Assembly: GCF_902652985.1 (NCBI RefSeq)
Contig: NC_047025.1
Span: 27,342,001-27,406,000, forward strand
Source: Pecten maximus
Taxonomy: Eukaryota
Length of the DNA: 64,000 nucleotides
Direction of reading: 5' to 3'
Part shown: positions 1 to 63,130 of the stretch, piece by piece
Layout of the letters: the number at the start of each line of letters is the position of its first letter
Position numbering within the stretch: the stretch's first letter is position 1
Position numbers and translations under genes: made by a program
The notes under the pieces: generated by a model
What the model was told of the DNA's origin: nothing
What the model saw: only the letters and a program-made list of their open reading frames with translations
The model's database searches: none

Positions 1-159
1 TGTTCTAATAATTCCTAGCTATGGTGATATGACAGAACGTATTCCACCTTTTCCCTCCACGACTTGAATCCTTTCTGTGACGCAGGGATCCATCATTAGA
101 AAGCTCCAAGCTTTGCTAATCAATTTGATGATACATATGTACATTATTTTAAATTTTAG

Positions 160-6100: not shown

Positions 6101-9100
6101 AGAAATCATGAAATTGTAAAATAGTACAATGATCGCTTTAGTATTAAATTTGCATGTTCCTTTAAGTCTTTAGGTTCATGAAACGTTTCATAAATGGACG
6201 ACGTAATTCACATTCACAACAGCAAGAACCCAGGACTGAGTGAAAAGCGGATGGTTTCTCTTAATTTTACATGTATGATGCAGTATTCATATGAATAGGT
6301 TCCTTTTTTAATTAAGCCTTTATTTTAGCGATTTTAACTATAAATCCTTACTTGTGATGTTTTAAGATTCGTTCAATATTAAGTTTTTGTTATTATTGAT
6401 TTCAGCAGCAATGACCAACACTGTACACCTACATACGACAGCGGCACCTAACACCGTAAACACAAATACGACAGCGTCACAAACATCGGGTAAGACTAAT
6501 AGAATCGTTCACCCCCTTGGGGGTGAGACAGGGGAATCTCAACCCGAGGGGAAGATTATTAAGTTGCCAAACACGAGGCTTGCCGAGTGTTTGGCAGCTT
6601 AATTATCTTACCCTGAGGGTTGAGATTCCCCTGTCTCACTGCCATGGGGGTGAATGATTATTTTTCTCTTACCCTGTTTAACCTCTTATGTATCTAATAT
6701 TGACGTTAAAGTAATGCAAGGAAATGTTGACGTGACGAGATTGAATTGTCAACGTGCCGTCATTATACTGTTGCCGTGACGTCATGGTATTGTTGACGTG
6801 ACGAAATACAATTGTTGACTGCGGATATCCCTGCCCAGGGTAAGAGAATATTTTTCTCTTACCCTGTTTACCCCCTTATGTATCTGATATTTACGTTACA
6901 TCAATGGAAGGAAATGTTGACGTGACGTGATTGAATTGTCGTCGTGACGTCATTGTATTGTCGACGTGATAAATGCAATTGTTGAGAACGTGAAAAGAGC
7001 ACGTGTAGCTTGTCTTGAAATAAGAAAATCTCACCCTGGTAAAACTACGGATATCCCTGTCCAGGGATAAGAGAACATGTGATCTCGTATATCATAAAAC
7101 ATACCTGATTGTTCCAGAAACTCGAACAAGTCCTTTATATTACATTTGTTTAAGAACATTTCATGATATATATTTCCTTGTAGATTCTTTCTTGCAATAA
7201 ACTGCTTTAAAGTGCAGCTCATAGACAGTATGAATGTCACTTTATTATAAGCAAAGGACATGAAAGGCATCAATTTTATATCTTTTATATACGTGAATGG
7301 TACTTCTGTGTGGAATTGACCTTCAAAACTCGAATTTGTTTGTCCAGCTATGCAAGCTTCAACACATCAACAATCCACAATCGGAAGTAGTTCAGCGTCA
7401 TTTCTTTCCCCAGGTAAATATATGATTCTTATCATTGAAATAATACTAAGATAACAGATTAAACATTAATTAGAAAAATAGACAATCAAGATTTTGTCTT
7501 CGTCTTTCAATTACCATTTAACACGTTTGTCCACGAGGAGCCTTAAATGAAAAAAAACTACCATTTTAATCATATGATTTTTTTTCGTATATTGAATCCA
7601 TTTACATTCATCTAATTATCCTATCTGAATAATAATCTCATTTAAGCGGCCACATCAGAAGAATCTCAAGGAATGAGTGGTGCAGGTAGGTAATTATTTC
7701 TTATGATACCTGATTGTCTCTTTTGTTTTGTAATAACGATGTTACGAGGGATGATTTATATGTATGGAGCCTCGTATTGAAGGAGGTGCTCAATGAGGTT
7801 TTTTTTAAGTCCTATTATTCTCCGACAATATAGGGCCGTGTACCCAAGGACTGGTCTCATTTTGTTACTTTATATCGACGAGGTAGCACTCTAAAATGAA
7901 CAAGACAAGCGGCTTTTGTAAAATGGACAAAATCGGTTAGGGTTAGGGTTTGGGTGAAAGAATATGTCATTGCCATGACTGCCATTCACGATTTTGGCAT
8001 TAAATTGATTGAACATCCGCCTTATTCACCTGATCTCGCTCCATCAGACTTTCATCTATTTCCCAAACTGAAAACAGCTATTTCAGGCACCCTAACCCTA
8101 ACCCTTACATGCAGTGGATGACTTTCCTGAACAGCAGTATGTCCGACAAAATTCAAATCCTTCAATATGAGGCTCACAACTTATCAATCAGCCCTCGTAA
8201 TTTTTAGATACAAGCACATTTTGTTCAAAGTATATTTTTTTCACTGTCTTAGTGCTGTTTTATCAGGCCCAGTAGCTGTATGAGCCATTTGGCAATAAAA
8301 TACGATTTAGCTTATAATTTTTTGCATTGGTGATGTGAATATTTTCTGATTTGTCAAAATTTCGTTTTAATAAACTTTAGAGAAACAATTAAAAAATCGA
8401 ATTTAAATCAAAATTTAAAAGAAGGATAGAATTATAATAATAACAATACATTGTAGTACCTTAGCATCGGGATTATAGCACATTTGGATTACAGACTTAT
8501 ATATTACCACTACGCCAATATTCCTATTCGTATTAAATTCAATCAATTTAACAAAACTATACATCTCGTACGAGAATTGAAGATAAATGATAATCATTCT
8601 TCCTAATTTCAGTTCGGATTCTGTCCTAGACTGTTGATAATACGTATTCGTGTTTTATTCTTGTATAAAAATTCATATGAAATACAGTTGTATTTTGTTC
8701 CTTATGTAGAACTTGTATACATATTGAATGAATGTTTTGTTTCTGGTAAATTTTCATTTAATCACCTCTGCTGGATAATTACTCAATGTTCTGTTTCTAG
8801 TGTTAGGAATCATCATTGGAGCATGTCTGTTAGTAGTATGTGGTGTAGTTACGGGTGTCATATGTGCCTTTTATAAGAAGAAAAAGATGCAAATCGAAGA
8901 CAAGGTAACAACAATTTATATATTTTGAGCTCCTTAATTCTAAAATGAAAAACAAATTTGATTTCAATTATTCAAACATTTATAAGCGGAATATTTATAT
9001 TATTAAACTATCGGGTGACGACTTATATTACATCAATCATTTAACCCCTGAATGAAGGAAATAGTATATAACAAATAATGTATAATCATTGACATAATAA

Positions 9101-10543: not shown

Positions 10544-12185
10544 TCAGCATCCTGTTTGATCACACTTGATAAAGTGCCCGGTATCGATTCTAAAACCTTT
10601 GAAAACATTAAAGAGTTCATCAATTTTGGCTTGTGGTAGCGACCTCTGTCGGGAAAGAATCCAAGCAAATTCAAGATGGCTGATTCCAAGGATGTCAGTA
10701 CATGAGTAAATAAGTGTATATGAGGTGTAGTCTGTTTTAAGTACCCAGTAATTACCGTACGGCGTGTCTGTAACAGATAAAGAAATATATATAAGAGCGT
10801 CTTATTCACAGTGTTATCTATCATGTTTATTTCTGGAAATTTTGATACCATTATATCTCGGCACATATAAAGGTCTTTACTTATGAACTTACATGGAGAA
10901 AATTTTAAAAAGAGAAAAAGTGTAATGTGATTACTTACTTGCGGCGAATCTGATTTTAAGCTTAGCAGGTGAATTGAGGTCAGATTGGAAGGCATCACCG
11001 AAGGCAATAGAGCGATTTCTTGTCTTAGGACTGTAGGCGAGAAAATATACATTAGCAAATTACTTTGTACAATACCATATTTAGCAAATGTTGACAAAAA
11101 AATCAAACTTTATAGATTTTACTTATTGACACTTTCACTAGTATGTATGATAGTATACAACGGTCAGGGTAGGCCTAATTTTCAAGTAACATTAAAGACA
11201 AAACATAAAATGAATAACAATGCCATACATATTTGATGAACCAACTGTTACATAAAAGCCAGATATACCAAACAGCGTTCTGGTTAGAAAAGCATTTGTC
11301 TGACCATGATCTCATGTATACCTCTGTTAATATTATATATGTATAATTCCCGTTATAAACCACCGCTTCACTCATAAACAGTATATACTCACTCAATACC
11401 GACGTTCTTCACCCGGATATGGTTGTCAGGTAAAAGGGTATAGTTTGCGACGATACATTTCTCTCCTGATTCGAAGCTGGCTGGAAATTTGTAAAGTTCA
11501 TACCAATCGCCGATATACTGCAAAACAAATTGAACGAAACATTTAATTACTTGTAATTGGTTAATATTATAGTACTTTTTCATAACCAAGATTGATATTA
11601 ATGCCGTGATAATAAATCTATAAGAAGGCAGCTATATATTTTGGTTCATGCAACATAGAAATAAGAAAGGTTTAAACCTTACCTATGATTTTAGTTGAGT
11701 ATGACTTTAATTATGGTCAAGTAAGTATAATAAAATGGCATTTAAAGAGTCAAGGCATGGTTACTCACAGTATACGCCAAGAGGACATTTGTGATTTTAT
11801 ATTTTTCTTTTAATTAAAATATTAAAGACATATCACAGAGTATATTGATAAGAAAAATAACAAAAAAAAATGAAAAATGACATATTTAGTTAATTCATCT
11901 TATTGACCATGGTATTGCATAGATCATAGGGACTGCGTTTCATTTTAATTCCTTCTTTATATACCAACATATGCCCCTTTTTAGGTATGGGTTTAGGATT
12001 AAACCAATGGTTTCCAACAAAAGTTATGACTATTTTCTTTAAGCTTTTCTAATATGTGAATTCAAACTTACCTTGTTGAGATCGAAGTTTTCCATTGTAT
12101 GTGTAGTTGGGCAATGCCCGAAACTGAACGTCTGGGCCGAAGCGAAAACAACAACGGCCGCTAGAATTAAACCTTGTCGAAGCAT
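10544..12185 (-). CDS. APOD: Apolipoprotein D-like lipocalin 1 (184 aa, secreted)
   Basis: Exons 12185-12072 (signal peptide MLRQGLILAAVVVFASAQ, GHCP...FDLNK), 11517-11393 (YIGDWYELYKF, lipocalin SCR1 GxWY), 11030-10939 (AKLKIRF), 10767-10544 (YWVLKTDYTSYTLIYSC SCR2; AWILSR SCR3; ...KCDQTGC*). 555 nt, in frame. Confidence 0.93.
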
Positions 12186-12253
12186 GGTGGCAGTCGTGAT
12201 TTGTACGTTTTCAGCTGTAAGATGGATATGCAGGATTTTACTAAAACATGAGT

Positions 12254-12289
12254 CTTTATATAAGCAATGAACTAGACAAAGCTCACGTG
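12254..12289 (-). promoter_or_regulatory. TATA box (TATATAAAG) plus E-box (CACGTGA) of ApoD-1
   Basis: TATA at 12254-12262 lies ~70 bp upstream of the ATG. CACGTG at 12284-12289 has essentially the same spacing as in the paralog promoter. Confidence 0.6.
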
Positions 12290-14035
12290 TTGGGGAGTGT
12301 GAATTCCTTCAGTCTTATACAAGTCCTACTGTTATGAAATGTTTCTCACTGATAAGAGTCGGTGAAATTCCAGAGTAGCGAGTGTTGACTGTGTAAAGAT
12401 ATTGCCCAGTCACTACTGGTCAAAGGAATACAGCTGACCAGGATATACATCAAATGCAGACAAAAAGGAAACAGGCATATAACAGTATCGTAAAAGAAGA
12501 GAAAATATAACTATAATGTATGTACATTTATTGATGACAGGTATTCTATTAATTTTATTCGAAAGTTTGTTTTACAAATTTAATTATTATAAAAGTCCAT
12601 GTTACAACAACACCTGGCAATATACTTTTTTATATAAAGACACAATATTTCAATTGCCACTTATCAAGGTTTACATCTCCCCATCCAGATTTTTCTTTCG
12701 ACCGATTTCGAGCTTCCTCTATGGCCTGTTATTTATCAACACTTTTGACCATTAGCATCACTACCGAGTCCTAAAAAGGACGACAGCAGTAATTCCTTTT
12801 TGACTCTATTGTATCTTACACTCAATGGGAATTGGATAGTGCTAATATCTAGTGCGTCATTCGTAAAATCCATCTAGAACTATGTAAAGGATATTGCTGA
12901 TAGTTTTGTTCAAATCCTAGCAAAAAGAAAGACACTCCATGCTTCAACAGTTATCATCGATTCTAATCCCCATGATAAACAATAATTTGGAGAACTATTT
13001 TGGTTCTTCAGACGTTAAACAATTAGTTAATATTTGAGTAAATAATTAACATAACTGAACATCATAATTTAAGTTAACTGATTCTCTGTATAATTAACGA
13101 AATAAATTCTATAATTTGAACATATATCCTCATTACCGCAAATATCCATGTAAAGTATTCTTGGAAATGATATACAATGGATACTTATGCACATGCAAAC
13201 GGTAGACAAATACTGTGACTTTGTTGACTACATTATTAATTTAAAGGTACTTTAGAGATGAAACCAAAGCAAATATTTTACATACATAATATATACCTTC
13301 TAATAGGTCTGTATCGGACTATAGATTCGGTTTGAATTAAACGGTATATTACTTTCTTCACCTTAAATATCAATCTGACGTAAATAGTTCATAGAACTCT
13401 GCAGAATAACTGTTCAGAAGTTTGTTTACGATTCCGATATTACTTTATATGTAAGCCTTCCCCAACTCACGTGTACGGACACGGAGTTAGGGAATCACTG
13501 ACTCTGGTATGTACAGACGAGTGCTGGCCCTCTCATTCTGTCACAGATAAAGGACAGTTCATCTTCTAGGCTAGAGTTACGAAAGCTCTCGAGATGATTC
13601 ATCGGGCATAGTAATAACGTATATATGATTTTGCCCTCTTTTTCAAACTATGTGGATTACAAATGTGATTTCAGAAACAATGACGTGTCCATGAACACAC
13701 AAATGCATTGATCTTTCCGATTAAGTTTTTACAGTGCTTTAATTAAAATAATCCCTGAAATAAGCGGTAGTTCGGTAAAATGTTAATGTCTGTAGATTGT
13801 GTGTTCATATCTAATAATGAAATGCATATTATAAATACACTGGACTCCTCCGGGACTACATAATTTGGTCAGATTGTAGAGAGCATGATGTGTCATTACA
13901 TCTACAATTGATCAATAATAGTTGTGTTATGTATTGAATAATATATACAAGAAAATCTTGAAACCGCGTTTTATTTTATCTATATACAAACAGTGTTTAT
14001 TTCATATATGATCATTTTCCTGAAGAGCTACGTAT

Positions 14036-14592
14036 TGGTACGGTATAGTATTGGTACGGTATAGTATCGGTACGGTATAGTATCGGTACGGTATAGTAAT
14101 GGTACGGTATAGTATCGGTACGGTATAGTATCGGTACGGTATAGTAATGGTACGGTATAGTATCGGTACGGTATAGTATCGGTACGGTATAGTATCGGTA
14201 CGGTATAGTAATGGTACGGTATAGTATTGGTACGGTATAGTATTTACGGTATAGTATCGGTACGGTATAGTATCGGTAAGGTATAGTATCGGTACGGTAT
14301 AGTATCGGTACGGTATAGTATCGGTAAGGTATAGTATCGGTACGGTATAGTATCGGGGTACGGTATAGTATCGGTACGGTATAGTAATGGTACGGTATAG
14401 TATCGGTACGGTATAGTATTGGTACGGTATAGTATTTACGGTATAGTATCGGTACGGTATAGTATCGGTAAGGTATAGTATCGGTACGGTATAGTATCGG
14501 TAAGGTATAGTATCGGTACGGTATAGTATCGGGGTACGGTATAGTATCGGGGTACGGTATAGTATCGGTACGGTATAGTATCGGTACGGTAT
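14036..14592. repeat. 16-bp minisatellite (GGTACGGTATAGTATC)n
   Basis: About 35 near-perfect tandem units. They explain the spurious ORFs at 14002-14639. Confidence 0.95.
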
Positions 14593-15286
14593 AAACAACC
14601 ACCGGGAGCCAAGAAAGCCAACGATGCACACAAGATCAAAACGAAGTCGACGCCGGTTTACACACTGTAGATTTACTAGTGTAAAGAAGGAATGGGACCC
14701 TGAAATAAGGCCGGATTACAGAATACTTCAGTAGACCGAATTCGGCAGATTCAAAACCACTACAGATACATAAAGAAATATTCTGTACATTACTCGACTA
14801 GTTGAGACAAAGATCCAGATTGAACAGAGTCCGGTTTAGACAGTTTTCACTGTATATAAAATGTCGATATAATAGAATAAACAAGATACTACTGATGACG
14901 GTAATATCATACATAATTGTTTTTGCTTTGAAAAACTGCCAAAGTATTAAAAATGCATATTACACTGAAAGGCAAAATCCAACCAAATGTCCTCTGTCGG
15001 AAGCTATTAAAGCTTAAATATAAGAAAAAAGTTGTGAGATATGTATTGGAGAAATCAATAACGTTAAGGAACAGTCCGTGAGCCCAGTGCAAGCGTACGT
15101 AAAGGTAGAAGTAAGATTGGACATTCCTGAGAATATAATCTCGACTTTATCTGACCATGTCCAGTAGTGTTTCTTGTCGACCAACACAATTCAGGAATGT
15201 GGACATGGACGCTTGTTGACAGGTCTCGGTTGAAAATGTTTCATAAGCAACTTATATAATCTAAATTTCGAAAACACGCGTGAAAA

Positions 15287-15320: not shown

Positions 15321-15384
15321 GTGGACAATAATTTGTATAAACTGTGCAGACTTTTCTAGGGCTTGACACAACACTAAATCGACA

Positions 15385-17690
15385 ATGCTCAGACAAGCTT
15401 TACTTTTTGCCGTGGCCGTGGCCCTTTCTTCGGCGCAATCTTTCAGCTTTGGTGGATGCCCCTCCGTGACCACCCAGCAAAGCTTTGATCTCAACCAGGT
15501 AAGTCATTTTTACGATTCAGCATCACAGAACACCTTAAAAAGCGACGACAGAAATAGAAATAAAGGTTTGTCTCCGTACTGAAGGTATCCTTTATTTTGT
15601 TTTTTGTATCTGAGAGGAGTACATACATTTTTCTAATAATTAATACTTTTAATTGTTCCGGATTGTACAATATATCTAAAAATTCCAATTAATTCAATGA
15701 ACAGTATTCAATTTTACGCAAGCATATCATTTATTTTCAAATTAATCATTGTTTAAGCTACAGTAATACATATCACGTCTCTTTGCGACTAATTAATTCC
15801 GAAGTGATTGTTCTTCGTTTCGAAATATGACACAGGTACTTAGAAATCAATCAATATTTTATATAGCATTTTTTCTTGTCCGAACACTGATCTAGAAAAT
15901 ATTGCACATAGTGTATTTCAATCAGGAAACCTATTTTCCTGAACATATTTTCATCACGTTAAACTTTAACATGTTATTGTAATATAACTACATTGTTTCA
16001 TTCAAGATATACTCTAGAATTGATTTACATCAAGATAAGAAAATAATATATATCTTCCATTTTATTGTTGCATCGAATGTAGACAATTGTCAGTTTGCTA
16101 AAGATTAATATGAAAATCTAAATCATAAAATTGTTTAAAGTACTTTTTTAAAATTCACCCTGTTTCTGCTTATCAATAGGTATAACCTATCTTTTAAAAA
16201 CAATCCACGATCTGTGTGACCTTCTTTATCGATTGTGAGTTAGGATTTGTAGAACCTGCTATCAAACTATTGGCATCATCCTGATATTTCAATGACTTCT
16301 AGCAATTTTGGTGTGTGTGTGTGTGTTCGTCACCTAATAACCTCAGTTCTAGCCAACAGTTATAGACCTTTCTTCGTAAAACGCTCAAACATTGATTTCA
16401 ATGTTATAACGTCCTGCTATCAAAACAACATTGCACTAACAATGACTTTGAGATTACAATGACTGTATGCTTAAATGACCATTTGTTTACCATATTTCTA
16501 GTTTAATCGAAACCTGTACTAACTCTGACCGTATTACTTGTAGTACCTTGGGATATGGTATGAGTTGTACCGATTCCCTACCAGCTACGAGTCCGGTCAA
16601 AAGTGCATCACTGCTAACTACACCCTACAGGCCAACAACCACGTATACGTACACAATGAGGGATTCGAGTGAGTATACAAGAGCAATGATCCATTTCTTC
16701 AGGAATCATATAAGTATATACTTCCGTACATGTTGAAATATATTATTTGCTGTCAACTTTTAGAATCATACTAAAATAAAATTACAAAACAAAAATAGGT
16801 GGAAATACACCCATTATAACGGCAAGGGAAGTGGACAGTAAAGACCTTAATTCTTTGTAACCAGATAGCTTTTCCTCTTTTGCCATTTAGCAGACACCCA
16901 CTCAAACAGAGGACTGCCTTTTGGCATACGTTAATGGGTTAAGAACCGAGCAAAACTTTCATTTGGTCCCATATCCGCCACTTGGCAAAACAAATAAAAC
17001 AGCAAAATATTTTTTCATCCGATGTATTCATTACAATTAATGTGTACTCCTGTTACAGACCAAAGACAGGCAAACCTTCAATAGCCATCGGTGATGCGTA
17101 TCAGAATGATGTCCAGAACTCCCCCTCCAAACTGAAGATCAGATTCGCAGCCCGTAAGTAAACTACTGAAGCATCAGCTTCTCGGTTATTCATTTTACAT
17201 CATAACTGACTTGCGGCTTTTAGTATCTTAAGTTTTTCAGTTTTTGTAATATTTGCATACGAAATAAGTTACTGATGAATGCTGGACTTTTACTGCTTAA
17301 GAAGATGTTGAGTGAATCTTTAATGCAATTATCAACGTCCCTGATCGCAATGTGGACACGGTGTTTATAGATAAAGATATCAAGTGAAACGTATATGTTT
17401 TTTGTAAAATTTTCCTTTTGACTTGACATGTCATTATTAAAAATTTTAAATACTGTTTATTTCCAGATACACCTTACGGAAACTACTGGGTTCTGAAGAC
17501 AGACTACACCTCATACACACTGATATACTCCTGTATCGATATTGTCGGAATCAGTCATCTGGAACAGGCGTGGATCATGTCACGTGAAAGATCTCTTCCA
17601 CAAGATAAGATTGACGAGTTAATGGCCGTCTACAAAAGTTTCAACATTGATACAAACCACTTCGTGAAAGCTGACCAAGATAACTGCTAA
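15385..17690 (+). CDS. APOD: Apolipoprotein D-like lipocalin 2 (185 aa, secreted)
   Basis: Exons 15385-15498 (MLRQALLFAVAVALSSAQSFSFGGCP...FDLNQ), 16544-16668 (YLGIWYELYRFP...KCITANY), 17059-17153, 17467-17690 (YWVLKTDYTSYTLIYSC...AWIMSR...ADQDNC*). 558 nt. Intron positions and phases are identical to ApoD-1. Confidence 0.93.
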
Positions 17691-26629: not shown

Positions 26630-28470
26630 TTAACAAAAGTAATACCTTAAACAAACAAAGGTAAAACCGTTAACAAACAAAGGTAAAACCGTTAACAAAC
26701 AAAGGTAAAATAATAAACAATCCATTGTAAAACCATAAACAAAGGTAAAACCATAAACAATCAAAGGTAAAACCATAAACAAACAAAGGTAAAACCATAA
26801 ACAAACAAAGGTAAAACTATAAACAATCAAAGGTAAAAACATAAAAAATCAAAGGTAAAACCATAAAAAAAACAAAGGTAAATCCATAAACAATAAAGGT
26901 TAAACCGTAAACAAACAAAGGTAAAACTCTGAGAAAAAAAGGTAAAACCCTAAATAAACAAAGATAAAACCCTAAACAAACAAAGGTAAAACCATAAACA
27001 AACAAAGGTAAAACCGTTAACAAACAAAGGTAAAATAATAAACAATCCATTGTAAATTCATAAATTAAGGTAAAACCATAAACAATCAAAGGTAAAACCA
27101 TAAACAAACAAAGGTAAAACCATAAACAAACAAAGGTAAAACCATAAACAAACAAAGGTAAAACTATAAACAATCAAAGGTAAAAACATAAAAAATCAAA
27201 GGTAAAACAATAAAAAAAATCAAAGGTAAAACCATAAACAATCAACGGTAAAACCATAAAAAATCAAAGGTAAAACCATAAACAAACAAAGGTAAAACCA
27301 TAAACAATCAAAGATAAAACCCTAAACAAACAAAGGTAAAACTCTAAGAAAAACAAAGGTAAAACCCTAAACAAACAAAGGTAAAACCATAAACAATCAA
27401 AGGTAAAACAATAAAAAAAATCAAAGGTGAAACCCTAAACAAATAAAGGTAAAACCCTAAATAAACAAAGGTAAAACCCTAAACAAACAAAGGTAAAACT
27501 ATAAACAATCAAAGGTAAAACCATTAAAAATCAAAGGTAAAACCATAAACAAACAAAGGTAAAACCATAAACAAACAAGGGTAAAACCATAAACAAACAA
27601 CGGTAAAACTCTAAGAAAACAAAGGTAAAACTCTAAGAAAACAAAGGTAAAACCATAAACAATCAAAGGTAAAACCATAAAAAATTAAAGGTAAACCTAA
27701 ACAAACAAAGGTAAAACTAAACAATCAAAGGTAAAACCCTAAACAAACAAAGGTTAAAACCTTAAACAAACAAAGGTAAAACCATAAACAAACAAAGGTA
27801 AAACCATAAACAATCAAAGGTAAAACCATAAACAAACAAAGGTAAAACCATAAACAAAGGTTAAACCATAAACAAACAAAGGTAAAACCATAAACAATCA
27901 AAGGTAAAACCATAAAAAATCAAAGGTAAAACCATAAAAAATCAAAGGTAAATCCCTAAACAAACAAAGGTAAAACCATAAACAAACAAAGGTAAAACCA
28001 TAAACAAACAAAGGTTAAACTCTCAGAAAACAAAGGTAAAACCATAAAAAAATTGAAGGTAAAACAATAAACAAACAAAGGTAAATCCCTAAACAAACAA
28101 AGGTAAAACCGTAAACAAACAAAGGTAAAACAATAAACAAACAAAGGTAAAACAATAAACAAACAAAGGTAAAACCATAAAAAATCAAAGGTAAATCCCT
28201 AAACAAACAAAGGTAAAACCGTAAACATACAAAGGTAAAACTCTAAGAAAACAAAGGTAAAACCCTAAACAAACAAAGGTAAAACCATAAACGATCAAAG
28301 GTAAAACCTTTAACAAACAAAGGTAACATCATGAACAATCAAAGGTAAAACCCTAAACAAACAAAGGTAAAACCATAAACAAACAAAGGTCAAACCTTTA
28401 ACAAACAAAGGTAAAACCCTAAGAAAACGAAGGTAAAACCATAAAAAAATCAAAGGTAAAACCATAAACA
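26630..28470. repeat. ~22-bp A-rich minisatellite (AAACAAACAAAGGTAAAACCAT)n
   Basis: About 1.8 kb tandem array. It explains the hydrophobic spurious ORFs on the minus strand. Confidence 0.95.
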
Positions 28471-29643
28471 ACAAAAACAACATTTATCGGATACATTTGT
28501 AAAACTTGCCAGTACTATTGGCTGTCTTTATCTTTAATATTACCAGAAATGGATTTTTTCGCTGTGGATCAAAGTTGGAATTGCCGGTTTTCCACTGAAT
28601 GACATACATTTACACTGTGAGAATAACAAGGTCAACAACGAGATCTGCAAACCCACACATTTCGTTATCGTCTGCTTGTAAACATGGCGATCCAGAGAGT
28701 GGAATCACGATACGTATCGGTGAAATTATACTCAACCTCTCTGACATAAATATCATACATAACAGTAACGATACGGAGCGGAGCGCACAGAAAACAAAAA
28801 CTGAACCTTTCAGATAAAGCAGTGTTTTATCTTTAAATGCAAAAATCACGTGCCTCTGTTCTGTCTATCTGCACCTTGATGCATACGAAAGGTATGATGA
28901 AGTCCTACATGTTGAAAATTACATCGCTGTATGCTTCAGTTTACAAAAGATAAACTAGTCGTGATTTTGTCCCGTTTTTATTCCAGTAACATACATTAAT
29001 GGTTGTAGAATAGATAGAATGCATCGTTACTGACTTGTACAATGCAAGATTTGTTTTTGGCCTCATTATATGGAAAAGACAAAGCATTTGATACTGAATA
29101 GTAGTCCATTCGGAAACTGTGAATTAATTAGTTCATGCATAATTGATTCAAGCGACAGTATTTACAGTTGCACACAATAATCTGGTATATAGACTGATTA
29201 CGTGATTACCAATTTCAAATTCTGTGAGATAACATTCGTAGGTGTTCAATATATAATGTCTAGGTGACCGCGTATCAGGTGGACGCCATAGACACCATCA
29301 ACATTCAGTTCGATATCTCGACAGGGCGCGAGTAAAGTTGTCTTGCTTTGTCGTTTTTATTTTATGATTTCTATAGCTGATCACATACACACACTCGGAT
29401 TCACATTCCAAGATATATACACCGCGATCCAGGTGCCCATATCATCAACATGAACTAGATGATCTGTCACTTTGAAGAATCTGCGGCACTAACTGTAATT
29501 GTAAATTAACGTAGTTATTAGTGCCTATTACAATGATTTATCAGGTCTGTTCATTTGAACAATTAAAGGTTTGATTGTCCTAACATACTCTAATCGGGAG
29601 TGTTGTAGTTCTATAAAAACTGACCATTGTTCCCACTAAATGT

Positions 29644-32600
29644 CTATTCCGGACGCGCAGTCTGTGGCCGATCTGTTGCTGCTGGTGGAGTTCCGTTATC
29701 TGCAGGAGGACTTCCGTTATCTATTGGAGGACTTCCGTTATCTATTGGAGGACTTCCGTTATCTATTGGAGGACTTCCGTTATCTATTGGAGGACTTCCG
29801 TTATCTATTGGAGGACTTCCGTTATCTATTGGAGGACTTCCGTTATCTATTGGAGAAGTTTCGTTTTCTATTGGAGGAGATACCTCATCTGGTTGATGAT
29901 GTCCGTCGTTGTTTGGAGGAGTTCCGTCATTTGATGGAGGTTTTCCGTTGTCGTCTACGACTTTTTGACTTCCAAATGCATCGTTTTCCTGTTCAAATAC
30001 ATTTAATCGTTAAAATAGGTGTAATTTACATTTGTATGTACACAATAATATTGATTTTATTCATTAATTCCATGAATTTTGTCATTTACTTCATTGACTA
30101 GATAGGTTTCCCTGAAAGGAAAGGCGCGCCCCAGCCCAGAAATGATTTGGTGTCCGATATTCTGATTGATTTCGTTTTGAATGTGTCGCGATTTACTTTT
30201 TAATCTGTTTATACTTTTTTGAGACCCGATCTTGTCTTGACTTTGTGCACTGATTGTGTTTTTAATTGTCTCTGAGACCCGAGCTTATCTTGTTTTTGTC
30301 CTGATTTTGTTTTGACTTTGAGACCTAATCTTGTCTTGATTTTGTGTCTTGATTGGGTTTTAAATTGACTCTAAGACCGGAGCTTATATTGTTTTTGTCT
30401 TGATTTTGTTTTGACTCTGTGTCTTGATTGTGTTTTGACCTTGAGACATAATCTTGTGATTACGTTGTGTCCTGGTTTTGACACAACATACCAAGACCAA
30501 TATCAAATCTTTTTCGTGTATAACAGATCGGTTGGACGCCGAACGTGCAAAATACATGTTTTAATGCTTATAAAGGAGTCGCTATTCAATATAATAAAAA
30601 ATGTAAATATCAGAAAAATATGTATTATAGCTAGTGTATATGTACTATATTTTGTATTTGTTTCATTGTATGTAAAGAGGAGGCGTTTCATAAGTACAAA
30701 TAGCTTGTGCACGATCCCTACGTCTCTTTCTTTGAAAATAGAATAGTTTGAACTAAACACAGCTAGAGGTATGACTAGTTAAATACAACAGTTTTCATAA
30801 GAAATAGGATATAGAATTGTCATGTATCAATCAAGAAAGTATTCGTGAATACTGGCTGAATGTCTTACCTCAAGCTCTGTGTCTAACTTTGGAATACGGA
30901 TTGAATGTTTTACCTCTGGGTCTACCTTTGGAATACTGACGAAATGTCTTACCTCTACCTCTTTGTCTACCTTTGGAATACTGACTGAATGTCTTACCTC
31001 TGGGTCTACCTTTGGAATACTGACTGAATGTTTTACCTCTAGCTCTGGGTCTACCTTTGGAATACTGACTGAATGTCTTACCTCTGGGTCTACCTTTGGA
31101 ATACTGACTAAATGTTTTACCTCTAGGTCTGGGTCTACCTTTGGAATACTGACTAAATGTTTTACCTCCAGGTCTGGGTCTACCTTTGAAATACTGACTA
31201 AATGTTTTACCTCTGGGTCTACCTTTGGAATACTGACTAGATGTCTTACCTCTGGGTCTACCTTTGGAATACTGACTAGATGTCTTACCTCTGGGTCTAC
31301 CTTTGGAATACTGAATGAATATTTTACCTCTAGCTCTGGGTCTACCTTTGGAATACTGACTGTATGTCTTACCTCTTTGTCTACCTTTGGAATACTGACT
31401 GAATGCTTTACCTCTGTGTCTAACTTTGGAATACTGACTGAATGTTTTACCTCTAGGTCTGGGTCTACCTTTGGAATACTGACTGTATGTCTTACCTCTG
31501 GGTCTACCTTTGGAATACTGACTGTATGTCTTACCTCTGGGTCTACCTTTGGAATACTGACTGAATGCTTTACCTCTAGCTCTGGGTCTACCTTTGGAAT
31601 ACTGACTGAATGTCGTACCTCTGGGTCTACCTTTGGAATACTCACTGAATGTCTTACCTCTGGGTCTGGGCCTACCTTTGGAATACTGACTGAATGTCTT
31701 ACCTCTTTGTCTACCTTTGGAATACTGACTGAATGTCTTACCTCTAGCTCTGGGTCTACCTTTCGCTTCTTTTTCGCCTTCTTCTTTAGTAAGCCAAATA
31801 TCAATCCACCTAGACAGCCGGCTGCGGATAGGATACTGGCAGTGGCAACCAATCCAGTAGCTACTGGTGACACTGAAAACAGCGGACATTTACCCTTAAT
31901 TGAATGAAGTCTAAGAAATATATACATGTATATATACAGTGTTTATAATACTGTCATAAGTACTTCAAACCATAGCAGCGATAACAATATACCGAATTGG
32001 GCATAGAAGTAACGTAATGAAAAATACAGTTTGTCAAAAATAGGGTAAGAGAAACGTCTAAGTCTTACGTCTAAGCCTAACGTCTAAGTCAAACGTCTAA
32101 GCCTAACGTCTAAGTCAAACGTCTAAGTCAAACGTCTAAGTCAAACATCTAAGTCAAACGTCTAAGTCAAACGTCTAAGCCTAACGTCTAAGTCAAACGT
32201 CTAAGTCAAACGTCTAAGTCAAACATCTAAGCCTAACGTCAAAATCAAACGTCTAAGTCAAACGTCTAAGCCTAACGTTTAAGCCTAACGTCTAATCCTA
32301 ACGTCTCAGCCAAATATCTAAGCCTTAAGCCTAACGTCTAAGCCTAACGTCTCAGCCAAACTTCTAAGCCTAACTTCTAAGCCTAACGTCTAAGTCAAAC
32401 GTCTCAACCTAACGTCTAAGCCTAACATCTAAGAGTCTAAGCCTAACGTCTAATCCTAACGTCTCAGCCTAACGTCTAAGCCTAACATCTAAGAGTCTAA
32501 GCCTAACGTCTAATCCTAACGTCTAATCCTAACGTCTCAGCCTAACGTCTAAGCCTAACATCTAAGAGTCTAAGCCTAACGTCTAATCCTAACGTCTAAT

Positions 32601-35600
32601 CCTAACGTCTCAGCCTAACGTCTAAGCCTAACGTCTAATCCTAACGTCTAAGCCTAACATCTAAGAGTCTAAGCCTAACGTCTAATCCTAACGTCTCAGC
32701 CAAATATCTAAGCCTTAAGCCTAACGCATAAGCCTAACGTCTAAGTCAAACGTCTCAGCCTAACGTCTAAGTCAAACGTCTAAGCCTAACGTCTAAGCCT
32801 AACGTCTCAGCCTAACGTCTAAGTCAAACGTCTCAGCCAGACGTTTAAGTTAAACGTCTCAGCCAAATGTCTAAGCATTGAGGGTAAGCTACCGATAAGT
32901 CACAGTTATGCCATTGTCGAGCCTGGCCACTAATCTTTTATCGTCATTATATTCTAAATACAATCCTGATAATGACCGATGCCTGCCCTATTCTTGTTGT
33001 CTGACATGTACATGTCATATCTTATCTTTCCAAAACCAAAAGTCTTTCTCGTTGGTCCAATCATAAGTCAGTATTTTAAATAATCTGTTTTCAATTCTCT
33101 TTTTCATTTTCCTGATTTCCATTAAGAATTACCACAATTTTGTCTCCTTCCATCTCTGAAGAGTCCTAGGACAAAACGCTATATGGTCCAGTTCTATAAT
33201 ATATACACTATTGATAGTATAGACTCTATTCACTGTTGTCTTTTGTATCGCCAGTATAAGAGATCGGGACATATGTCGTGCAAATGCGTCAGTGAAATGG
33301 CACTTTTAAATCAGGCCCTTAATTGGCCTAATTCAAGACGGTGCCGTTTTTAGATTCAACGTTGACCAATTCTGTGAAATGTCAGACTTACGGCCTTCGT
33401 CGCCCTGTTCCTCCTGGTTGCCAGCTGTCAGAGAATTTTTTGTAGTTGCTGAAGCCGGACCTCCGGTTCGACCTGTTACTCTACTCCCAGAAGTTGTCCT
33501 TGTTCCCGTGGATCTAGTTGTCTTTCCATTACTTCCGGCAGAAGGGCCACCTGTACTAGCTCCGGCGAAGGTCGTTACAGTGCTTGCCTGTCTGGTACCA
33601 CCTGTTGATGTTTTATGTAAGACAAGTAAGTATGCACAAAATTTACGAGGGAAAAACTACTGAATACTGTAAAGTTCAAATAGGCCTGGTACTGCATGAA
33701 CATAATGTACATAAAACGTAATATCTATAATTATTATTAGTATGATTATGCAGGTGTTCCGTCCCTTTAGGACTGGTCAGCGATGACACCAAAATGGGTC
33801 GGAACAGATAGTAAGGGGAAGCATTTCGGTTCTAGTTTCGTTCTTTGTTTTGATTTTTAAAATTGAATTAAATTTCATTAATTTAATATTTAGTTTTTTC
33901 ATTTTTGTTTTTGTTTTGTTTGTTTGTTTGATCTTTTAATTAACTACATTCCTATCTAGAGTATTGTCATAACACAAAGTATTACAAACTTGGAACTTCT
34001 ACCTGTTGATGCCACTGTGACTGTTGTCAATATTGATGAAGTAGAAGTTAACAAGGGTACCGAAGTCACTGGTCGGGATGACGTAGTCGAACCACCTGTC
34101 GGGCCTGATGTGTGAGAGCCAGAACTCTTAGTTATAGTACCGGTAAAAGGTGATGTGCTGGCCTTGGCTGGAGTGGTGGGTGGGGGACCTGTTATAATAT
34201 ACCAGAACACATTTTCACATTATCGACTTTGTAGTGCAGTGAATGATGTAATAAAAGAAATTTTCATATTGAAGAAAAAAAACACTCTCAATATTGACAT
34301 CCTGCATTAGTTGGAGTTCATTTTAGACATTTATTCTGTCGACTTTCCTTCTTTGAGAACATGTAACAACATTTCTTTGACGTAGGTTTACACTACAGAT
34401 ATTATATTGGACAATGAACAGTGAAAGATGTAATGAAATATGTTGAAATTAGATAAAATATCCAATATTTAGTCTGACATCCTTACTTTGAGGATATTGC
34501 CCTATATTACAATACATATATTGGCGGGAAACAGAAATACAATCATATTCATTGATGATTTTCTGAGGGACTCCACCTGAAAATCTTGTTAATATTTTCA
34601 TCGATTTTGAGTTTGAATTACGGTTTTGATAACGCTTGTATATTGTTTCCTTATTCATTTCCTTATTTTTAAACAAAGGAGACTGAATGTGTAGCTCAAA
34701 TATAACATTATGAATAATTTTAAGGATGCATAATATTTTAAGCAAAGGTGGTAAACAATCATCACAATACATAATATCAAATGTATCACTACAAAAGTAA
34801 AACAAATACACCAATCATGTTCCTAAAGTATGCAGTACTGATCATTTTTGTCAAATGTATAAATGACTTCAGGAGATACACACATTTTCCAGTGTAGGAG
34901 TTCCAAAACTGAACTTCAATTAATCCAAACTTGGAGTCTTGGGAGTGAGCACCACCTCCCCAATATGGAGATACGTAGATAAGTGTCCCTTTACTGTACA
35001 ATGACGTATTTCCGCCGCCAGGAATGATGGGATGCCAGACCCGGATTCCGTTTGATGAGTAGGAATACACCACTCCTCCAAACTTGTCATGAGGATCTGT
35101 GTTCTGAACGGCACCCAGGGCAGGAAAGAAAAATCCTTTGTTGTCGCCGCTCAGGGCTTTGACCTGCACAAATCAATATTCCAAGTTCTGGTGTATTCGA
35201 TTTTAGCGCATCATAAAATTTTGACAAATGGCGTAAATATGAACTGGCACACTCGTTATTAGATGCTATGAAAATAATATAGATGTTGTACAGTATAGTT
35301 AGCGCTATGCCTCCGCCGCGAAAAATGCGAAAATAAGGCTACCGCTGAAATATGCTTATTTACAGTTAGTGATCATTTAAAAAAAAAACTATTGGATTGC
35401 TCTGTTTTTAATTCGATATTATCTTTACAATATGGGTCGCGTTGTTACCAAAAGTTTTGAAAGAGAAACATTTCAATTCAATTTCATTTCAGTTTTATTC
35501 CGAAAGTCTTACAACATATAGGACTATAGTATATATACATGAAAGGACACACCCTCGTTCCATCGCTACAATATCATTTTTGATACAGGAAACTTACAGA

Positions 35601-38600
35601 ACAATATCAATTTTCTACAGAGATTATGAAACCATTATTTCTGTATTGATGTAATTACACTTAATTTGTAGCAATTCTTCGCATTTTAATTTATATCCCC
35701 GAAAAGAAGATCTACATTAACATTTTTACCATTACAGACACCAGTCCGGTATCTATGTTCAGTCTCCCACCAACACTCCCCAGTTGAGAGGAATGCATTC
35801 CAGGACTTTGTCCAATGGTTGCGTTAGATTTATAAACAGAATCTCCAGGCATATGTCCCCACACTCTGACCTTGACCAAGCCCTCTGACCAAGTCTCTTG
35901 TGATCCTATGCCCCAACCATCCGCCACACTAAATATTTTTCCTGAAACAAGAAAAAAATCATAACAGACATGTCACTTTTATTGCGAGAGTTTATGTGCC
36001 AGAAAGTTTATGCTTGGTGACGTAAATGAAAGTGATAAGAAGAAAAAATTAGCTATAATCGTTTTGTTTTCATAACAATTTGTGCTTTATACATTGAAAA
36101 AAAATAGCAATAGCAAAACCACATCATCAGGTTTAGTTATTAACACTTATTACATAATACACAATATACATTAAACGTGTACAGTGCATTTAAAAATAAA
36201 TTGATGCATGAAAGAAATAGTTTAAATGTTTGATTCGGAATGATTAAAATAAAAACAGAATACAACGAGAAATGCATGAACTGTGAACAGAATTTGAGAA
36301 TTATCAAAGTCTATTTATTTCTATTTATACAGTGTACAGATACAGATACAAATAGTTTATTAAAGTTTTACCTTTCGTAAATACATTAAAACATTGCTAT
36401 ACATGCATATGAATAATCACATAAAATTTAATCACGAAAGTCACTCTAAAAGAGTTATGAGAGACTACAGATATTTGTTTTAAATGTAACATCAATAAAA
36501 ACTTTACATCGGGTTAAAATAAGATCAGTCTCCAGAAAAGAAAATAATTCATTGGTAGTACATTAGATTTCTTCGGCGATTTAAAATATCACACAGGGTT
36601 AGGCACAGAACTAAACACAGTGTCTGTCTGAAAAACCTATTGCAGCTTCTGAACGTTACTAAGCTGATTAGAATAAGCGTCAATATTTTCCGCTTTAATA
36701 AAAAGAGTTTCGCGTATATCCTCGTAAATGGGACATGTACCTCATCCCCGTGTCCTCGTTTATTTGGGTCAGCCCCAGCGAGGATATTAAAACAAGAGCA
36801 GCTAGCCAATGACATGAATCTTGTAGATGTAAATGTTTACCTGTGTCGAATCCAGGTACCCATATCCGTACGTATGTGTCATTGAACCCGTAGACAACCC
36901 CACCCCAGGATGTCTCTTTCTTGAGATTATTGGGTGTCATTCCTGATGCTGAACAGAATAAAATGGAAAACATAATTTAACAGCAACAGCATACAGGCAA
37001 TCCCAACCGGTAGATGACCGGAACTTAATAAGATACTAAAGATTAAAACATATCTTTTGTGTTATGGAGCGAACGGATTGGGCAAAAGTTATTTCAAAAT
37101 ACACAGTAATAAAGGTCCTCTACTACCAATTAAGAAATAGCATAATCTGATCGCAATGAATACCATTTCCATACAATAAAATATAATAGTACAGTTGATA
37201 CAAGGTGGTTTATGAAAATTTAAGATCACATAACTAAACATTTTGCACATTTATAAAAATTGTAAAGTTTAGACATTTTCTTGATTGAGCAATGTATTGA
37301 TCGCTATTTTCTGTTTTCCTTGATATTTCCCCCTCTCTCTTAACCTCTGTTGTAAGGTCATAATGTGTATGAAACGACATATCATTGCAATCCAATAATT
37401 TTTGTAGCAATAACTGGTATATTTTACAAAATTGCGTTATAATGTGTTCCAAAACTGCGAAAGTATATTTAGCATCATATACATCATATCTAAATATATA
37501 TTTATATATACATAATGCATAACGAAAACAAAATAATTTTTTTTTAAAAACGCGCTAAACGTAAGAAATGTTCTTTGCCAACTGCGGCCAAACTATCGTA
37601 TACGCAGTCAGAGGTACAATCCTAAATTATATACGTCATATTTAAATATTTATATATACATAATGCATAGCGAAAAAAAATAAAAAAAATAAATAGAAAT
37701 AGAAGTTTATATAAGTGTGAATTATGAAACTCAAGGTAGGTAAGTATGTTTTTTTTTCCAGAAATTATACCGAGTTTACGCGGATGTTATACTTCAAGAG
37801 AAAGACAGGAATATCTTACCATTTTGAAGGTACGTCTGGGGTTGTGGAACATTAGAGTACTTATAATCATATACTCAAATCCACACAAGATCTGAATACA
37901 ATTGTAAGTGATAGTATTTCTATCACTACCCTTATTTTGATTTAAGCTTCCTAATATTATTGATAATAATACGACAATACTTCGATCAATAATACATCAC
38001 CAAACATACCTATTCCATCTGCGTACCAGTCGGTATCATTGTTCCACACTTGTACCGTTACATACTCGGGAACGTAACCTAAATTGTGACGTACTTCTTG
38101 GAAAGAGTCAGTACCTAAAAGTGAAAATGTAAACAGTGCATATTCAAATCATTTGTAATCAGCAAAATGTTTTTTCAGCTTTCACAAACAATGACAAAAA
38201 ACAAAAATAAAAAACAACCTTTTGTTTCAATTTTCAATGAACGAATAGAATTGTAAATTATTCTACATCGTACATAAAAGTAATGTAAACAGCATGGTCC
38301 GTTACGTAATATCCGTGAAAACATTTCATTTTTCGTTACCGCGAATACTTGAGCCATCGAAAACCTTTACAGTATAAATATGAGAAAAGCACACAAACAA
38401 ACAAAAAAAACCATCCAAGTTGACAGTAGATAACGCCAATATATATACTTGCCATTTTTTACTTTCATGTGGATCCAGTTTGACTCGTAATCCGGAGTGG
38501 GGAAATTACAGGAGGTCCACACCCTGACTCGTGTCTCAGCTTCCTCCTCCTTCTGTACCTTAGGCCCAAACCAAGTATTGTTATAGCCTGTCAATGGGAG

Positions 38601-40664
38601 TACAATAACATATACATATCATATCTATGTATATGCTGCACGGTAATTACATTCATTGTGGAATTTATTTTCGGGGTTTGTGTATTTTAGCATACCCCAC
38701 GGTGATTTTGTTCTGTGTAATATTCATTTTCGTGATTTGTATACCCTTTTATGCTACCGACACAATATTTTATCACAGTGTATAGTGTTCATAATCTTTG
38801 TAAATATTTATTTTATAGGTTTAGGTTTCCTGTAATATATTTCTCGATCATCCATATTTTAAACTAACTCTTTTACAGAAGGTCTGAATTTTCAACAAAA
38901 TAATCCATAGATAAAGCGTGTAGAGTAAAATCAAAACAAAGGTAAGATTTACCGTCATATTTTACCATAATATAGGGGAATGTCATCGTGCACAAATTCT
39001 CATTAAGTTGATTGTATTTTGCGTGTGATAATTTTATTTACTGACCTTTGCAGTATTTGTCATATATGTAATACATTTTTTTTTTTTTTTTTTTTTTTTT
39101 TTGTAATACATCAACTGTCAGTTAACCTGGTCACGTGGCAGCGAAATCTATAACAAGCCTTTATTATCTTACCTGTAAATATTACCGTACCATCACCAGA
39201 ATTATCGTGCCTATTGGGAACATACAGTTTGACTGACGTTTCATTATACTTGTAAACAACGCCTCCATACACTCCTGATTTGTCATCATCACGTTGAGAG
39301 GATCCAAGTCCGGGGAATACGAAGTTTGTGTCACTACCGCTGATTGGCCTAACTTGGATATCAACCTTGATGGGAACTTGTGTGATGTTGAGTTGTATGA
39401 TGGCCTCTGAGTGGACAGATTGTGCTTTAAGTTTGACGTAACTGCTGACGTAATTTGGCGGTTGGAGACACGTCCCACATTTTATAGTTGCGTCTGATGA
39501 TCAAAACGAAAACAGTATGGCATCATAGCGACAACACATGTAAACATCTATCGGTATCATAGCAACAATACATGTACATATATATCGGTAACATAGCAAC
39601 AGAAAATGTATACATCTATCGGTATCATAGCAACGACACATGCACACATATCTCAGCATCATAGCCACACAAAATCGGTATCATAGCAACGACATATGTA
39701 CGCGTCTATCGGTATCATAGCGACAATACATGTACACATCTATCGGTATCATCTTAGCAACACATGTACACATCTATCGGTATCATCTTAGCAACACATG
39801 TACACATCTATCGGTATCATAGCAACGACATATGTACGCGTCTATCGGTATCATAGCGACAATACATGTACACATCTATCGGTATCATCTTAGCAACACA
39901 TGTACACATCTATCGGTATCATCTTAGCAATACATGTACACATCTATCGGTAGCATAGCAACGACACATGTACACATCTATCGGTATTATAGCAACAACT
40001 CGTGTACACATCTTTTGGTATCATAGCAACAACACATTGACACATCTATTGGTATCATAGCAACAAGATATGTACACAACCATTAGTATCAAAACAACAA
40101 CGCATGTACACATCTATTAGTATCATATCGACAACACATGTACACATCTATCGGTATCATAGCAACAACACATGTCGCATCTATCAGTATCATAGCAACA
40201 GTAAATATACACGTTAACCATCATATCAACAATGAATACTACAGAAAATATACATGTTAAGACAGCCATGATGTATGTAAAATGTATTTTAAGTTAGGAG
40301 AAGGCTAACTAAGTTGTAAGAACTTGTGCCTAATCCTTTTTTTTGTCATTTTAAGGCAATGCAATATATCTAAACCAATACTACATAATCTTGATATACT
40401 ATACATATTTATTTCATTTTAGATAAGTTTCAGTGTTGTCTTACTGTCTTTTCAGTCCTCTACTTACGGCCTTTGGCGTATAGGGCAACACACATTATTA
40501 CGTAATTAAAAGTGTCAAAATTAAAGAAATGGCATAGAGATGTTGCTGATCGAAAATTAGAGAAAAAAAAAGTGCAGTTATTAATATTAGATAAATAATG
40601 GTAGTTGTTTACCTGTATGATAAATAGAGGCTATAAAGACACTGTAGAAGGCCACTTTGTCCAT
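29644..40664 (-). CDS. Gene B: uncharacterised type-I membrane protein (~694 aa): signal peptide, three ~120-aa repeat domains, S/T/G-rich stalk, TM helix, (IDNGSPP)n cytoplasmic tail
   Basis: Exons 40664-40613, 39493-39173, 38587-38453 (GC donor), 38114-38010, 36948-36841, 35941-35730, 35163-34884, 34188-34003, 33601-33392, 31872-31742 (TM LVATASILSAAGCLGGLIFGLL then KKKAKKKRK), 29988-29644 (stop TAG). Total 2085 nt, in frame, with all phases matching. Confidence 0.8.
29690..29880 (-). repeat. 21-bp coding repeat (IDNGSPP)n in the last exon of gene B
   Basis: Tandem GGAGGACTTCCGTTATCTATT units on the + strand, read in frame as IDNGSPP on the minus strand. Confidence 0.85.
30860..31760 (-). 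repeat. 39/45-bp tandem array (22 units) derived from the gene B exon-intron junction; open reading frame VDPE(LE)V(R/K)HSVSIPK
   Basis: ORF 30827-31927 continues the TM exon through the whole array. Each unit contains GAG|GTAAGA, GAG|GTAAAA/G or (once) GAG|GTACGA. Confidence 0.9.
32054..32876. repeat. 13-bp minisatellite (AACGTCTAAGCCT / AACGTCTAAGTCA)n
   Basis: Tandem array inside a gene B intron. Confidence 0.95.
39520..40200. repeat. ~33-bp minisatellite (ATGTACACATCTATCGGTATCATAGCAACAC..)n
   Basis: About 20 tandem units in the first coding intron of gene B, next to the acceptor. Confidence 0.9.
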
Positions 40665-59100: not shown

Positions 59101-59543
59101 TGTTCCGGACTCGCCAAAGAAGGATCGGGATTATGTCGGCCTTCGATTACCCAAGAGTTCAGAACCCGCTTCACCGGCCGGGACGGATAATGGATGGATG
59201 GCCGTTTATCCGAGGACTAAGGAACATCGATGGCTTCAATGAACGCTTTGCTAGAATGACGTCATACTCTCGTTCACCAACTTGTGCAAGATGTTATAAT
59301 CCAACATGGCCGTTTCCGGTTTTACAGTGTGACGTTGGGAATCGACGATGTATTTCTGCACCAGTTCCGCCCCAGGATACGGTAGCATTTGCTAGCGCCA
59401 TGAATAGAGGGAACCAAGTAGCCCGAGCTAGGTCGAGCGTGGAAAGAATAGGCCCCTTGCCAATAGGAGGGAAGTTTGAGTCAGTGTTTACCGACGCCAG
59501 GGTTAGGGGTGATACTCTACCATACGGTCCTGTGAATAACTAA
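56139..59543 (+). CDS. TYR: Secreted tyrosinase / tyrosinase-like protein (~454 aa)
   Basis: Exons 56139-56152 (MRTG, micro-exon, tentative), 56942-57326 (signal MQWLLVITVAVCACTAIVKA; propeptide ending RGKR; RREVRTLSPREW), 58178-58293 (YDAIANVH...SAHGGPNFLGWHRVYL, CuA), 58694-59543 (PYWDS; EAYHNGPHVW; AAQDPIFFLHHAFIDYIWE, CuB). All six copper-binding His are visible. Confidence 0.93.
57564..57647. mobile_element. Palindromic mini-MITE, copy 2 (84 bp) with perfect 9-bp TSD
   Basis: TAGCCCGAGTTTCCTC...GAGGAAACTCGGGCTA flanked by CTTGTTTAA (57555-57563 and 57648-57656), in a tyrosinase intron. Confidence 0.85.
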
Positions 59544-62900: not shown

Positions 62901-63130
62901 GGATAACAGTATGGGTATCAGTAGAGGATGACAGTAGGGGTATCAGTAGAGGATGACAGTAGGGGTATCAGTAGTGGATAACAGTATGGGTATCAGTAGT
63001 GGATAACAGTAGGGTTATCAGTAGTGGATAACAGTAGGGGTATCAGTAGTGGATAACAGTAGGGGTATCAGTAGTGGATAACAGTAGGGGTATCAGTAGT
63101 GGATAACAGTAGGGGTATCAGTAGGGTTAT
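59925..63130. repeat. Compound satellite: 25-bp (CGGTACGGTCACCAGTAGGCCATAA), ~47-bp (GGATAACGGTAGGGTTATCAATAGGGCTTATCAGTAGTGTTACCATT) and 25-bp (CAGTAGGGTTATCAGTAGTGGATAA) blocks
   Basis: Three adjacent, mutually alignable arrays at ~60090-60930, ~61050-62095 and ~62100-63130. Confidence 0.95.

Follow-up and report, generated by a model that had tools for sequence, protein, structure and literature searches.

Gene B of the scallop Pecten maximus carries, at the end of its transmembrane (TM) exon, a tandem array of 22 in-frame 5' splice donors, and we consider it most probable (at roughly 0.7) that this array is an intronic minisatellite of the Pecten lineage, the first unit of which spans the exon-intron boundary, with the first donor being used and the other 21 being removed together with the intron. 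What we document below is the anatomy of the array in the window (the whole stretch of 64,000 nucleotides analysed here), its origin, its lineage restriction, the apparently neutral variation among its units and the use of the first donor in the annotated gene model. By analogy with F7, LMNB2, PDGF, IFI6 and CBS, the downstream donors would be mostly silent in vivo.

Gene B and its protein family

Gene B has as its sole model NCBI's 'mucin-19-like [Pecten maximus]' (P0001, 487 aa, chromosome LR736848.1), the locus of which (L003; GCA_902652985.1, LR736848.1) is identical to window positions 27644-38940, and joining the seven window exons listed in Table 1 rebuilds the P0001 sequence exactly. 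Counted with its upstream piece, gene B (window 29644-40664 (-); L003 1-792) is represented at NCBI by two models, of 192 aa and of 487 aa (P0001). P0002, a 631-aa protein encoded by one ORF in the RNA-seq assembly of another scallop, is colinear with all gene B window exons, which suggests that the 192-aa and 487-aa models are one gene split in two. An enoyl-CoA hydratase-like gene (PF00378; 22348-23928 (+)) adjoins gene B, and a matching neighbour is found in Mizuhopecten yessoensis (L004 23059-26745), so that synteny is conserved.

The penultimate exon lies between the acceptor ...ttttcag/TGT and the donor GAG/gtaagaca (slashes mark splice junctions), and its final 18 nt are the exon part of array unit 1. 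P0001 joins this first donor (31742/31741) to the acceptor of the last exon at 29988, which makes array units 2-22 intronic in this model. The same intron holds an unrelated 53/99-bp repeat (30218-30416). The last exon contains a 21-bp tandem repeat (29683-29878 (-); 9.3 copies, 93% matches by TRF) that encodes SPPIDNG units, is translated in P0001 and is hence truly coding. Only about 3 copies of it occur in Ylistrum balloti (L001 8060-8124), and the length of the cytoplasmic tail does differ among scallops, by way of this exonic repeat.

Table 1. Window coordinates of gene B, its last intron and the donor array.
Feature	Position	Strand	Basis
Signal-peptide exon, gene B	near 40611-40664	-	tblastn P0002/P0001
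Ectodomain exons, gene B	about 39171-39497, 38448-38594, 38011-38115	-	tblastn P0002/P0001
Upstream exons of gene B, overall	33392-40664	-	tblastn of P0002 and P0001 against window
P0001 exons 1-3 of 7	36940-36841, 35941-35730, 35163-34884	-	exact rebuild
P0001 exons 4-5 of 7, mucin-like stalk	34188-34003, 33601-33392	-	exact rebuild
P0001 exons 6-7 of 7	31872-31742, 29988-29647	-	exact rebuild
Penultimate exon, 131 nt: TM helix, KKKAKKKRK stop-transfer, VDPELE	31742-31872	-	exact rebuild, translation
Boundary-spanning minisatellite, 22 units (12 x 39 bp, 10 x 45 bp)	30842-31759	-	TRF and parsing
Authentic first 5' splice site GT (GAG/GTAAGA), donor of the annotated model	31740-31741	-	P0001 ...KKKRKVDPELE/ENDAFGSQK
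TGA closing the read-through frame if the intron is retained	30827-30829	-	translation
Last intron, unique remainder; acceptor ...tgaacag at 29989-29990	29989-30826	-	
Last exon, phase 0 start (ENDAFGSQK...), stop at 29644-29646	29644-29988	-	exact rebuild

The family of gene B is small and comprises 11 homologues from scallops and mussels, all named matches being from bivalves, and its members share a signal peptide, three tandem all-beta repeats with the conserved motifs DGWG and VRVW, a Ser/Thr-rich stalk, one TM helix and a short tail. Modelling with AlphaFold2 gave a confident ectodomain, its pLDDT values being mostly 80-95 over about residues 30-410. None of the ten gene B exon ORFs has a Pfam domain above the cut-off, and a Foldseek comparison of the modelled ectodomain with the PDB gave TM-scores of 0.2 or below and no convincing match. 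An NPM1-C match to the array ORF was discarded as a repeat artefact, no stretch of it passing alone in Pfam. The gene B product appears to be a type I membrane glycoprotein, restricted to bivalves among the named matches.

Anatomy of the array

TRF reports the array at 30847-31745 with a period of 39, 21.1 copies, 84% matches and higher-order periods of 84 and 123. Each unit consists of a copy of the exon end, GTAGACCCAGAG, in some units extended by another CTAGAG-like hexamer (12-18 nt of repeated exon in all), followed by a 27-nt copy of the intron start, GTAAGACATTCAGTCAGTATTCCAAAG. Twelve of the 22 donors read GAG/GTAAGA, seven GTAAAA, two GTAAAG and one GTACGA when parsed on the minus strand; all 22 are in phase 0, and units 2-22 therewith supply 21 phase-0 pseudo-donors. 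The frame of the TM exon, followed from 31872, stays free of stops across the array until the TGA at 30829-30827, where it ends in ...HEYFLD. The original prediction had specified this architecture, that is, 22 units of 39 or 45 bp with length steps of 6 bp, a phase-0 donor of the given type in every unit, an open frame to ...HEYFLD at 30827 and a final exon beginning in phase 0 at 29988, and it is borne out by parsing, translation and the P0001 rebuild, respectively. In addition, every unit contains another phase-0 donor-like site, AAG/GTAGAC, which resembles the authentic donor CAG/GTAGAA of exon 34188-34003, so that the array holds about 43 in-frame GT sites and not 22.

The repetition itself is far beyond chance: the 27-nt intron part has 21 copies at three or fewer mismatches, all of them inside the array, versus 0 expected, and a 22nd passes over into unique intron sequence. 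Because all 21 full matches are confined to the array, we rejected a dispersed repeat or transposon fragment as the source of the unit.

The window as a whole is very rich in minisatellites, for which TRF lists 58 rows. Immediately downstream of gene B, 84 copies of a 22-bp unit form an array (26632-28475), the intron that precedes the TM exon holds 66 copies of a 13-bp unit (32053-32876), and dense 25-bp and 128-bp minisatellites at 60091-63130 follow a 295-aa open frame (58656-59540 (+)) with a tyrosinase central domain (PF00264, E = 9.5e-19). Given this richness, boundary-spanning arrays may perhaps not be rare in the P. maximus genome. The window further contains two lipocalin genes in inverted orientation (10547-12308 (-) and 15367-17687 (+), with PF00061 matches on exon ORFs), the C-terminal exons of which are near-identical (...DTPYGNYWVLKTDYTSYTLIYSC...).

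Orthologous junctions and the origin of the array

Paralog A (P0005, P. maximus LOC117338115) lies on the plus strand at 159-8905, cut by the window start, and its TM exon (8803-8905 (+)) ends QIEDK/GTAACA; TRF finds no array next to this exon between 6969 and 14032, just as had been predicted. An ORF at 7900-8118, between the paralog A exons 7347-7412 and 8806-8904, reads HPPYSPDLAPSDFHLFPKLK, which we take to resemble a mariner/Tc1 transposase motif; Pfam gave no match to it.

The scallop orthologues splice at the position equivalent to array donor 1. In Y. balloti the exon ends GTCGACCCGGAAATCGAG/GTGAGA (VDPEIE) and the protein junction is ...VDPEIE/NNDAFGSQ, the RNA-seq-derived P0002 has ...VDSETE/DEENGK, and in M. 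yessoensis the exon ends ...GATCCAGAGGGCGAG/GTGAAAAAGACTTAGTCAGTTCTGG. Neither the Y. balloti intron (about 630 bp) nor that of M. yessoensis (about 276 bp) contains an array, and because both species share the junction and have short introns free of the repeat, the array is a novelty of the Pecten lineage. In alignment, the 27-nt intron part of the unit in Pecten is recognisably similar to the M. yessoensis intron start, and unit 1 is the real exon end; the prediction that an exon end and the start of the following intron had been amplified is thereby upheld.

The ancestral unit is the one of 45 bp (VDPELE plus 27 nt), from which the 39-bp form differs by the loss of one hexamer of a CCAGAG/CTAGAG sub-repeat. 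The variants AAAGAG and ACAGAG are found in 39-bp and 45-bp units alike, which suggests repeated 6-bp slippage or exchange between units, and such events in a hexamer sub-repeat change length only in multiples of 3.

Variation among the units

The 22 units differ by 29 variant types, distributed 13/8/8 over codon positions 1/2/3 with no third-position excess, and the ratio of synonymous to non-synonymous types is 8/21 against 31/98 possible. Unit variation therefore looks neutral and free of protein-level constraint; no synonymous or third-position bias of the kind that marks a selected coding repeat was found among the units. Within the intron part, variation is highest at donor position +5, where 9 of the 22 units have A in place of G. 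Of the six reading frames over the array, three are open or almost open, one of these being antisense; in an intergenic 16-bp array at 14032-14593, two frames are open throughout. Other window arrays at 83-91% matches have 0% indels by TRF, so that the lack of 1-2-bp indels in the gene B array is typical of its surroundings and was rejected as a sign of selection, the length steps of 6 bp moreover falling within a direct repeat of a hexamer. Four checks (substitutions, donor +5, open frames and indels) thus speak against selection of the in-frame property. A period divisible by 3 necessarily puts every copy into the phase of the first donor, and an open frame needs nothing beyond such a period and a stop-free 27-nt intron start. 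The in-frame and open-frame pattern is therefore not remarkable, being an expected by-product with a prior of about 1 in 5 by our own rough estimate.

Donor strength and search for products

GAG/GTAAGA agrees with the donor consensus at 7 of 9 positions. The other authentic donors of gene B, read from the P0001 rebuild, are CAG/GTAAAC, ATG/GTAAAA, AAT/GTGTGT, CAG/GTAGAA and GCC/GTAAGT, and the GTAAAA units equal in quality donors that the gene already uses. In consensus match the donor of every array unit is no worse than these other authentic donors, and most array donors are as strong as the real donors of gene B; the array donors would in principle be competent. Any alternative product would be in frame and would thus escape nonsense-mediated decay.

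Products of this kind did not surface in protein databases. With the array ORF as query, a word-indexed search of the 204-650-aa proteins of a 5.8-billion set did not find the unit peptide and matched only P0001 and orthologues, confined to the TM part; with the TM exon and first units as query, the 69-220-aa fragments gave no match. P0002 as a word-indexed query returned family members but no long isoform of gene B, and no P. maximus transcript-derived protein of gene B stood among its matches. A full HMMER scan of 1.84 billion representative sequences with the array ORF did not find the unit peptide either, its 52 matches being of low identity save for the orthologue P0003; the three that were checked (P0015, P0026 and P0049) proved to be unrelated periodic proteins. 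One of these, P0015 (835 aa), has roughly 25-30 copies of QEDQDVEVLVFIP in otherwise ordinary sequence and might be a gene model reading through a similar period-3n minisatellite. These negatives are weak for the unit peptide, because short-read assemblies break at repeats of this kind.

NCBI annotates no second isoform of gene B. Since the NCBI model is incomplete, the gene being split in two, the first donor in P0001 may be the choice of a prediction program. Both the annotated model and the junctions of the orthologues are in accord with units 2-22 being intronic in the main mRNA.

Discussion

A class of minisatellites in which the first monomer lies across the border between exon and intron has been described (PMC1557585). 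The scallop array has minisatellite-sized units, and its unit 1 is the authentic exon end plus donor, reiterated downstream; on this structural definition it is an invertebrate, fully in-frame member of that class, of which no mollusc example was found in the literature searched. The IFI6 unit, with 12 nt, is much shorter than the scallop unit. A close counterpart of the arrangement is human F7 intron 7, a 37-bp VNTR of 5-9 units in which only the most upstream donor is used and the pseudo-sites work once that donor has been inactivated (PMC1557585). In both genes the first monomer spans the boundary, and the authentic donor is followed by pseudo-donors of identical sequence in competition for one acceptor; the array is intronic with respect to the normal transcript in F7 and to the annotated model in gene B. 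However, the F7 unit is not a multiple of 3 and most of its pseudo-sites would be frameshifting, whereas all 22 scallop units of 39 or 45 bp are in frame; F7 repeats only 4 nt of exon, compared with 12-18 nt here; and the silence of the F7 pseudo-sites is experimental, while the scallop array is known here from its sequence and a gene model.

The minisatellites of CBS, LMNB2 and PDGF, of 10-20 units, likewise reiterate a donor in the intron, but unit sizes differ and so does usage: LMNB2 and PDGF intron 4, with units of 100 bp and 81 bp, use the authentic donor alone, whereas CBS intron 13 uses, besides the authentic donor, the two pseudo-sites that lie closest to it (PMC1557585). IFI6 (6-16, G1P3), with a minisatellite at its exon 2/intron 2 boundary and about 25 pseudo-sites, again uses the authentic donor and the two nearest, so that three mRNAs and different isoforms of the protein result (Turri et al. 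1995, cited after PMC1557585 and PMC4526556). IFI6 is closest to the idea of a full ladder of isoforms built from downstream donors, yet it yields three mRNAs and no full ladder, and as an interferon-induced gene of vertebrates it has no relationship to gene B. Coding minisatellites of cytoplasmic or mucin domains, such as the SPPIDNG repeat within gene B itself, are alike in having a period divisible by 3 and in altering protein length, but the SPPIDNG repeat lies within an exon and is translated, whereas the 39/45-bp array is downstream of the annotated donor. Going by these cases, donor 1 is expected to be dominant, with the next one or two donors perhaps making a minor contribution.

We therefore favor the following sequence of events. 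A 45-bp segment, made of the 18-nt exon end (VDPELE) and the first 27 nt of the intron, would have been duplicated in tandem in the Pecten lineage and would have grown to 22 units via unequal exchange, the 39-bp form arising from 6-bp slippage in the CCAGAG/CTAGAG hexamer sub-repeat. Unit lengths of 39 and 45 bp are each divisible by 3, so that phase-0 donor and open frame would have been passed on to every copy as a by-product. On splicing, the donor farthest upstream (31742/31741) would be joined to 29988 and the 21 others would leave the mRNA with the intron as pseudo-sites, with at most the next one or two being in low-level use. Several observations count against so silent an array. The downstream donors look fully competent, in-frame products would be immune to nonsense-mediated decay, proximal pseudo-sites are constitutively used in IFI6 and CBS, the rule that the upstream donor wins comes from mammalian cells and not from molluscs, and the NCBI model is in two pieces.

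A modest departure from this would be a limited ladder, in which donor 1 is dominant and the second and perhaps the third donor are used at a low constitutive level, in the manner of IFI6 and CBS; units 2 and 3 would then add 13 or 28 residues with no particular function. Donors 2 and 3 share GAG/GTAAGA with donor 1, lie 39 and 84 nt downstream of it in frame, and have a precedent (PMC1557585, PMC4526556). Set against this, NCBI annotates a single isoform, and identical pseudo-sites are wholly silent in F7, LMNB2 and PDGF; we regard such limited use as unlikely, though it is the most credible of the alternatives.

The original prediction went considerably further, reading the array as a possible tunable cytoplasmic tail in which any donor could join 29988 in frame and add 0-21 copies of V(R/K)HSVSIPKVDPE; in its full form, this rival has many or all of the 22 donors in use and the frame kept by selection. 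It could appeal to the phase-0, consensus-like donors, the open frame, the phase-0 last exon, the exclusive 6-bp steps in length and the precedent of IFI6 for a short in-frame ladder from such a minisatellite (PMC4526556). However, the hexamer sub-repeat suffices for the 6-bp steps, an antisense frame is equally open, synonymous and non-synonymous variants stand as under neutrality with no third-position bias, the sole annotated isoform uses donor 1, the unit peptide is absent from both large protein databases, and the array is missing in Y. balloti and M. yessoensis. Known cases, moreover, use the first three donors at most (PMC1557585), and a functional ladder of 22 rungs, which would exceed every case on record, is unsupported. 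The origin by amplification, the competent-looking phase-0 donors and the lack of an array in paralog A thus survive from that prediction, and the tunable tail is unsupported: we consider it improbable that many of the 22 donors are used to produce graded tail lengths in 13- or 15-residue steps, and just as improbable that such a module is maintained by selection. Finally, an alternative terminal exon, with the intron retained, polyadenylation inside it and a protein ending ...HEYFLD after about 290 repeat residues, would make use of the frame open from the TM exon to 30827, but no gene model or database protein reads in this way, orthologues splice at that position, unit variation carries no coding signature and open frames over arrays are common in the window, all of which renders it very improbable indeed.

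What is unusual about the gene B array is that none of its 22 donors is out of frame, most equal the real ones in strength, and their products would escape nonsense-mediated decay. Unused donors could consequently not be put down to transcript decay, and the array would offer a natural substrate on which the human F7 rule that the most upstream donor wins can be tested in molluscs. It also carries a warning for annotation, in that an open frame running over a period-3n array follows from the period and is no evidence of coding. Should many of the donors turn out to be used after all, array length polymorphism would translate into a heritable, variable repertoire of cytoplasmic tails in this scallop, beyond the three rungs of IFI6.
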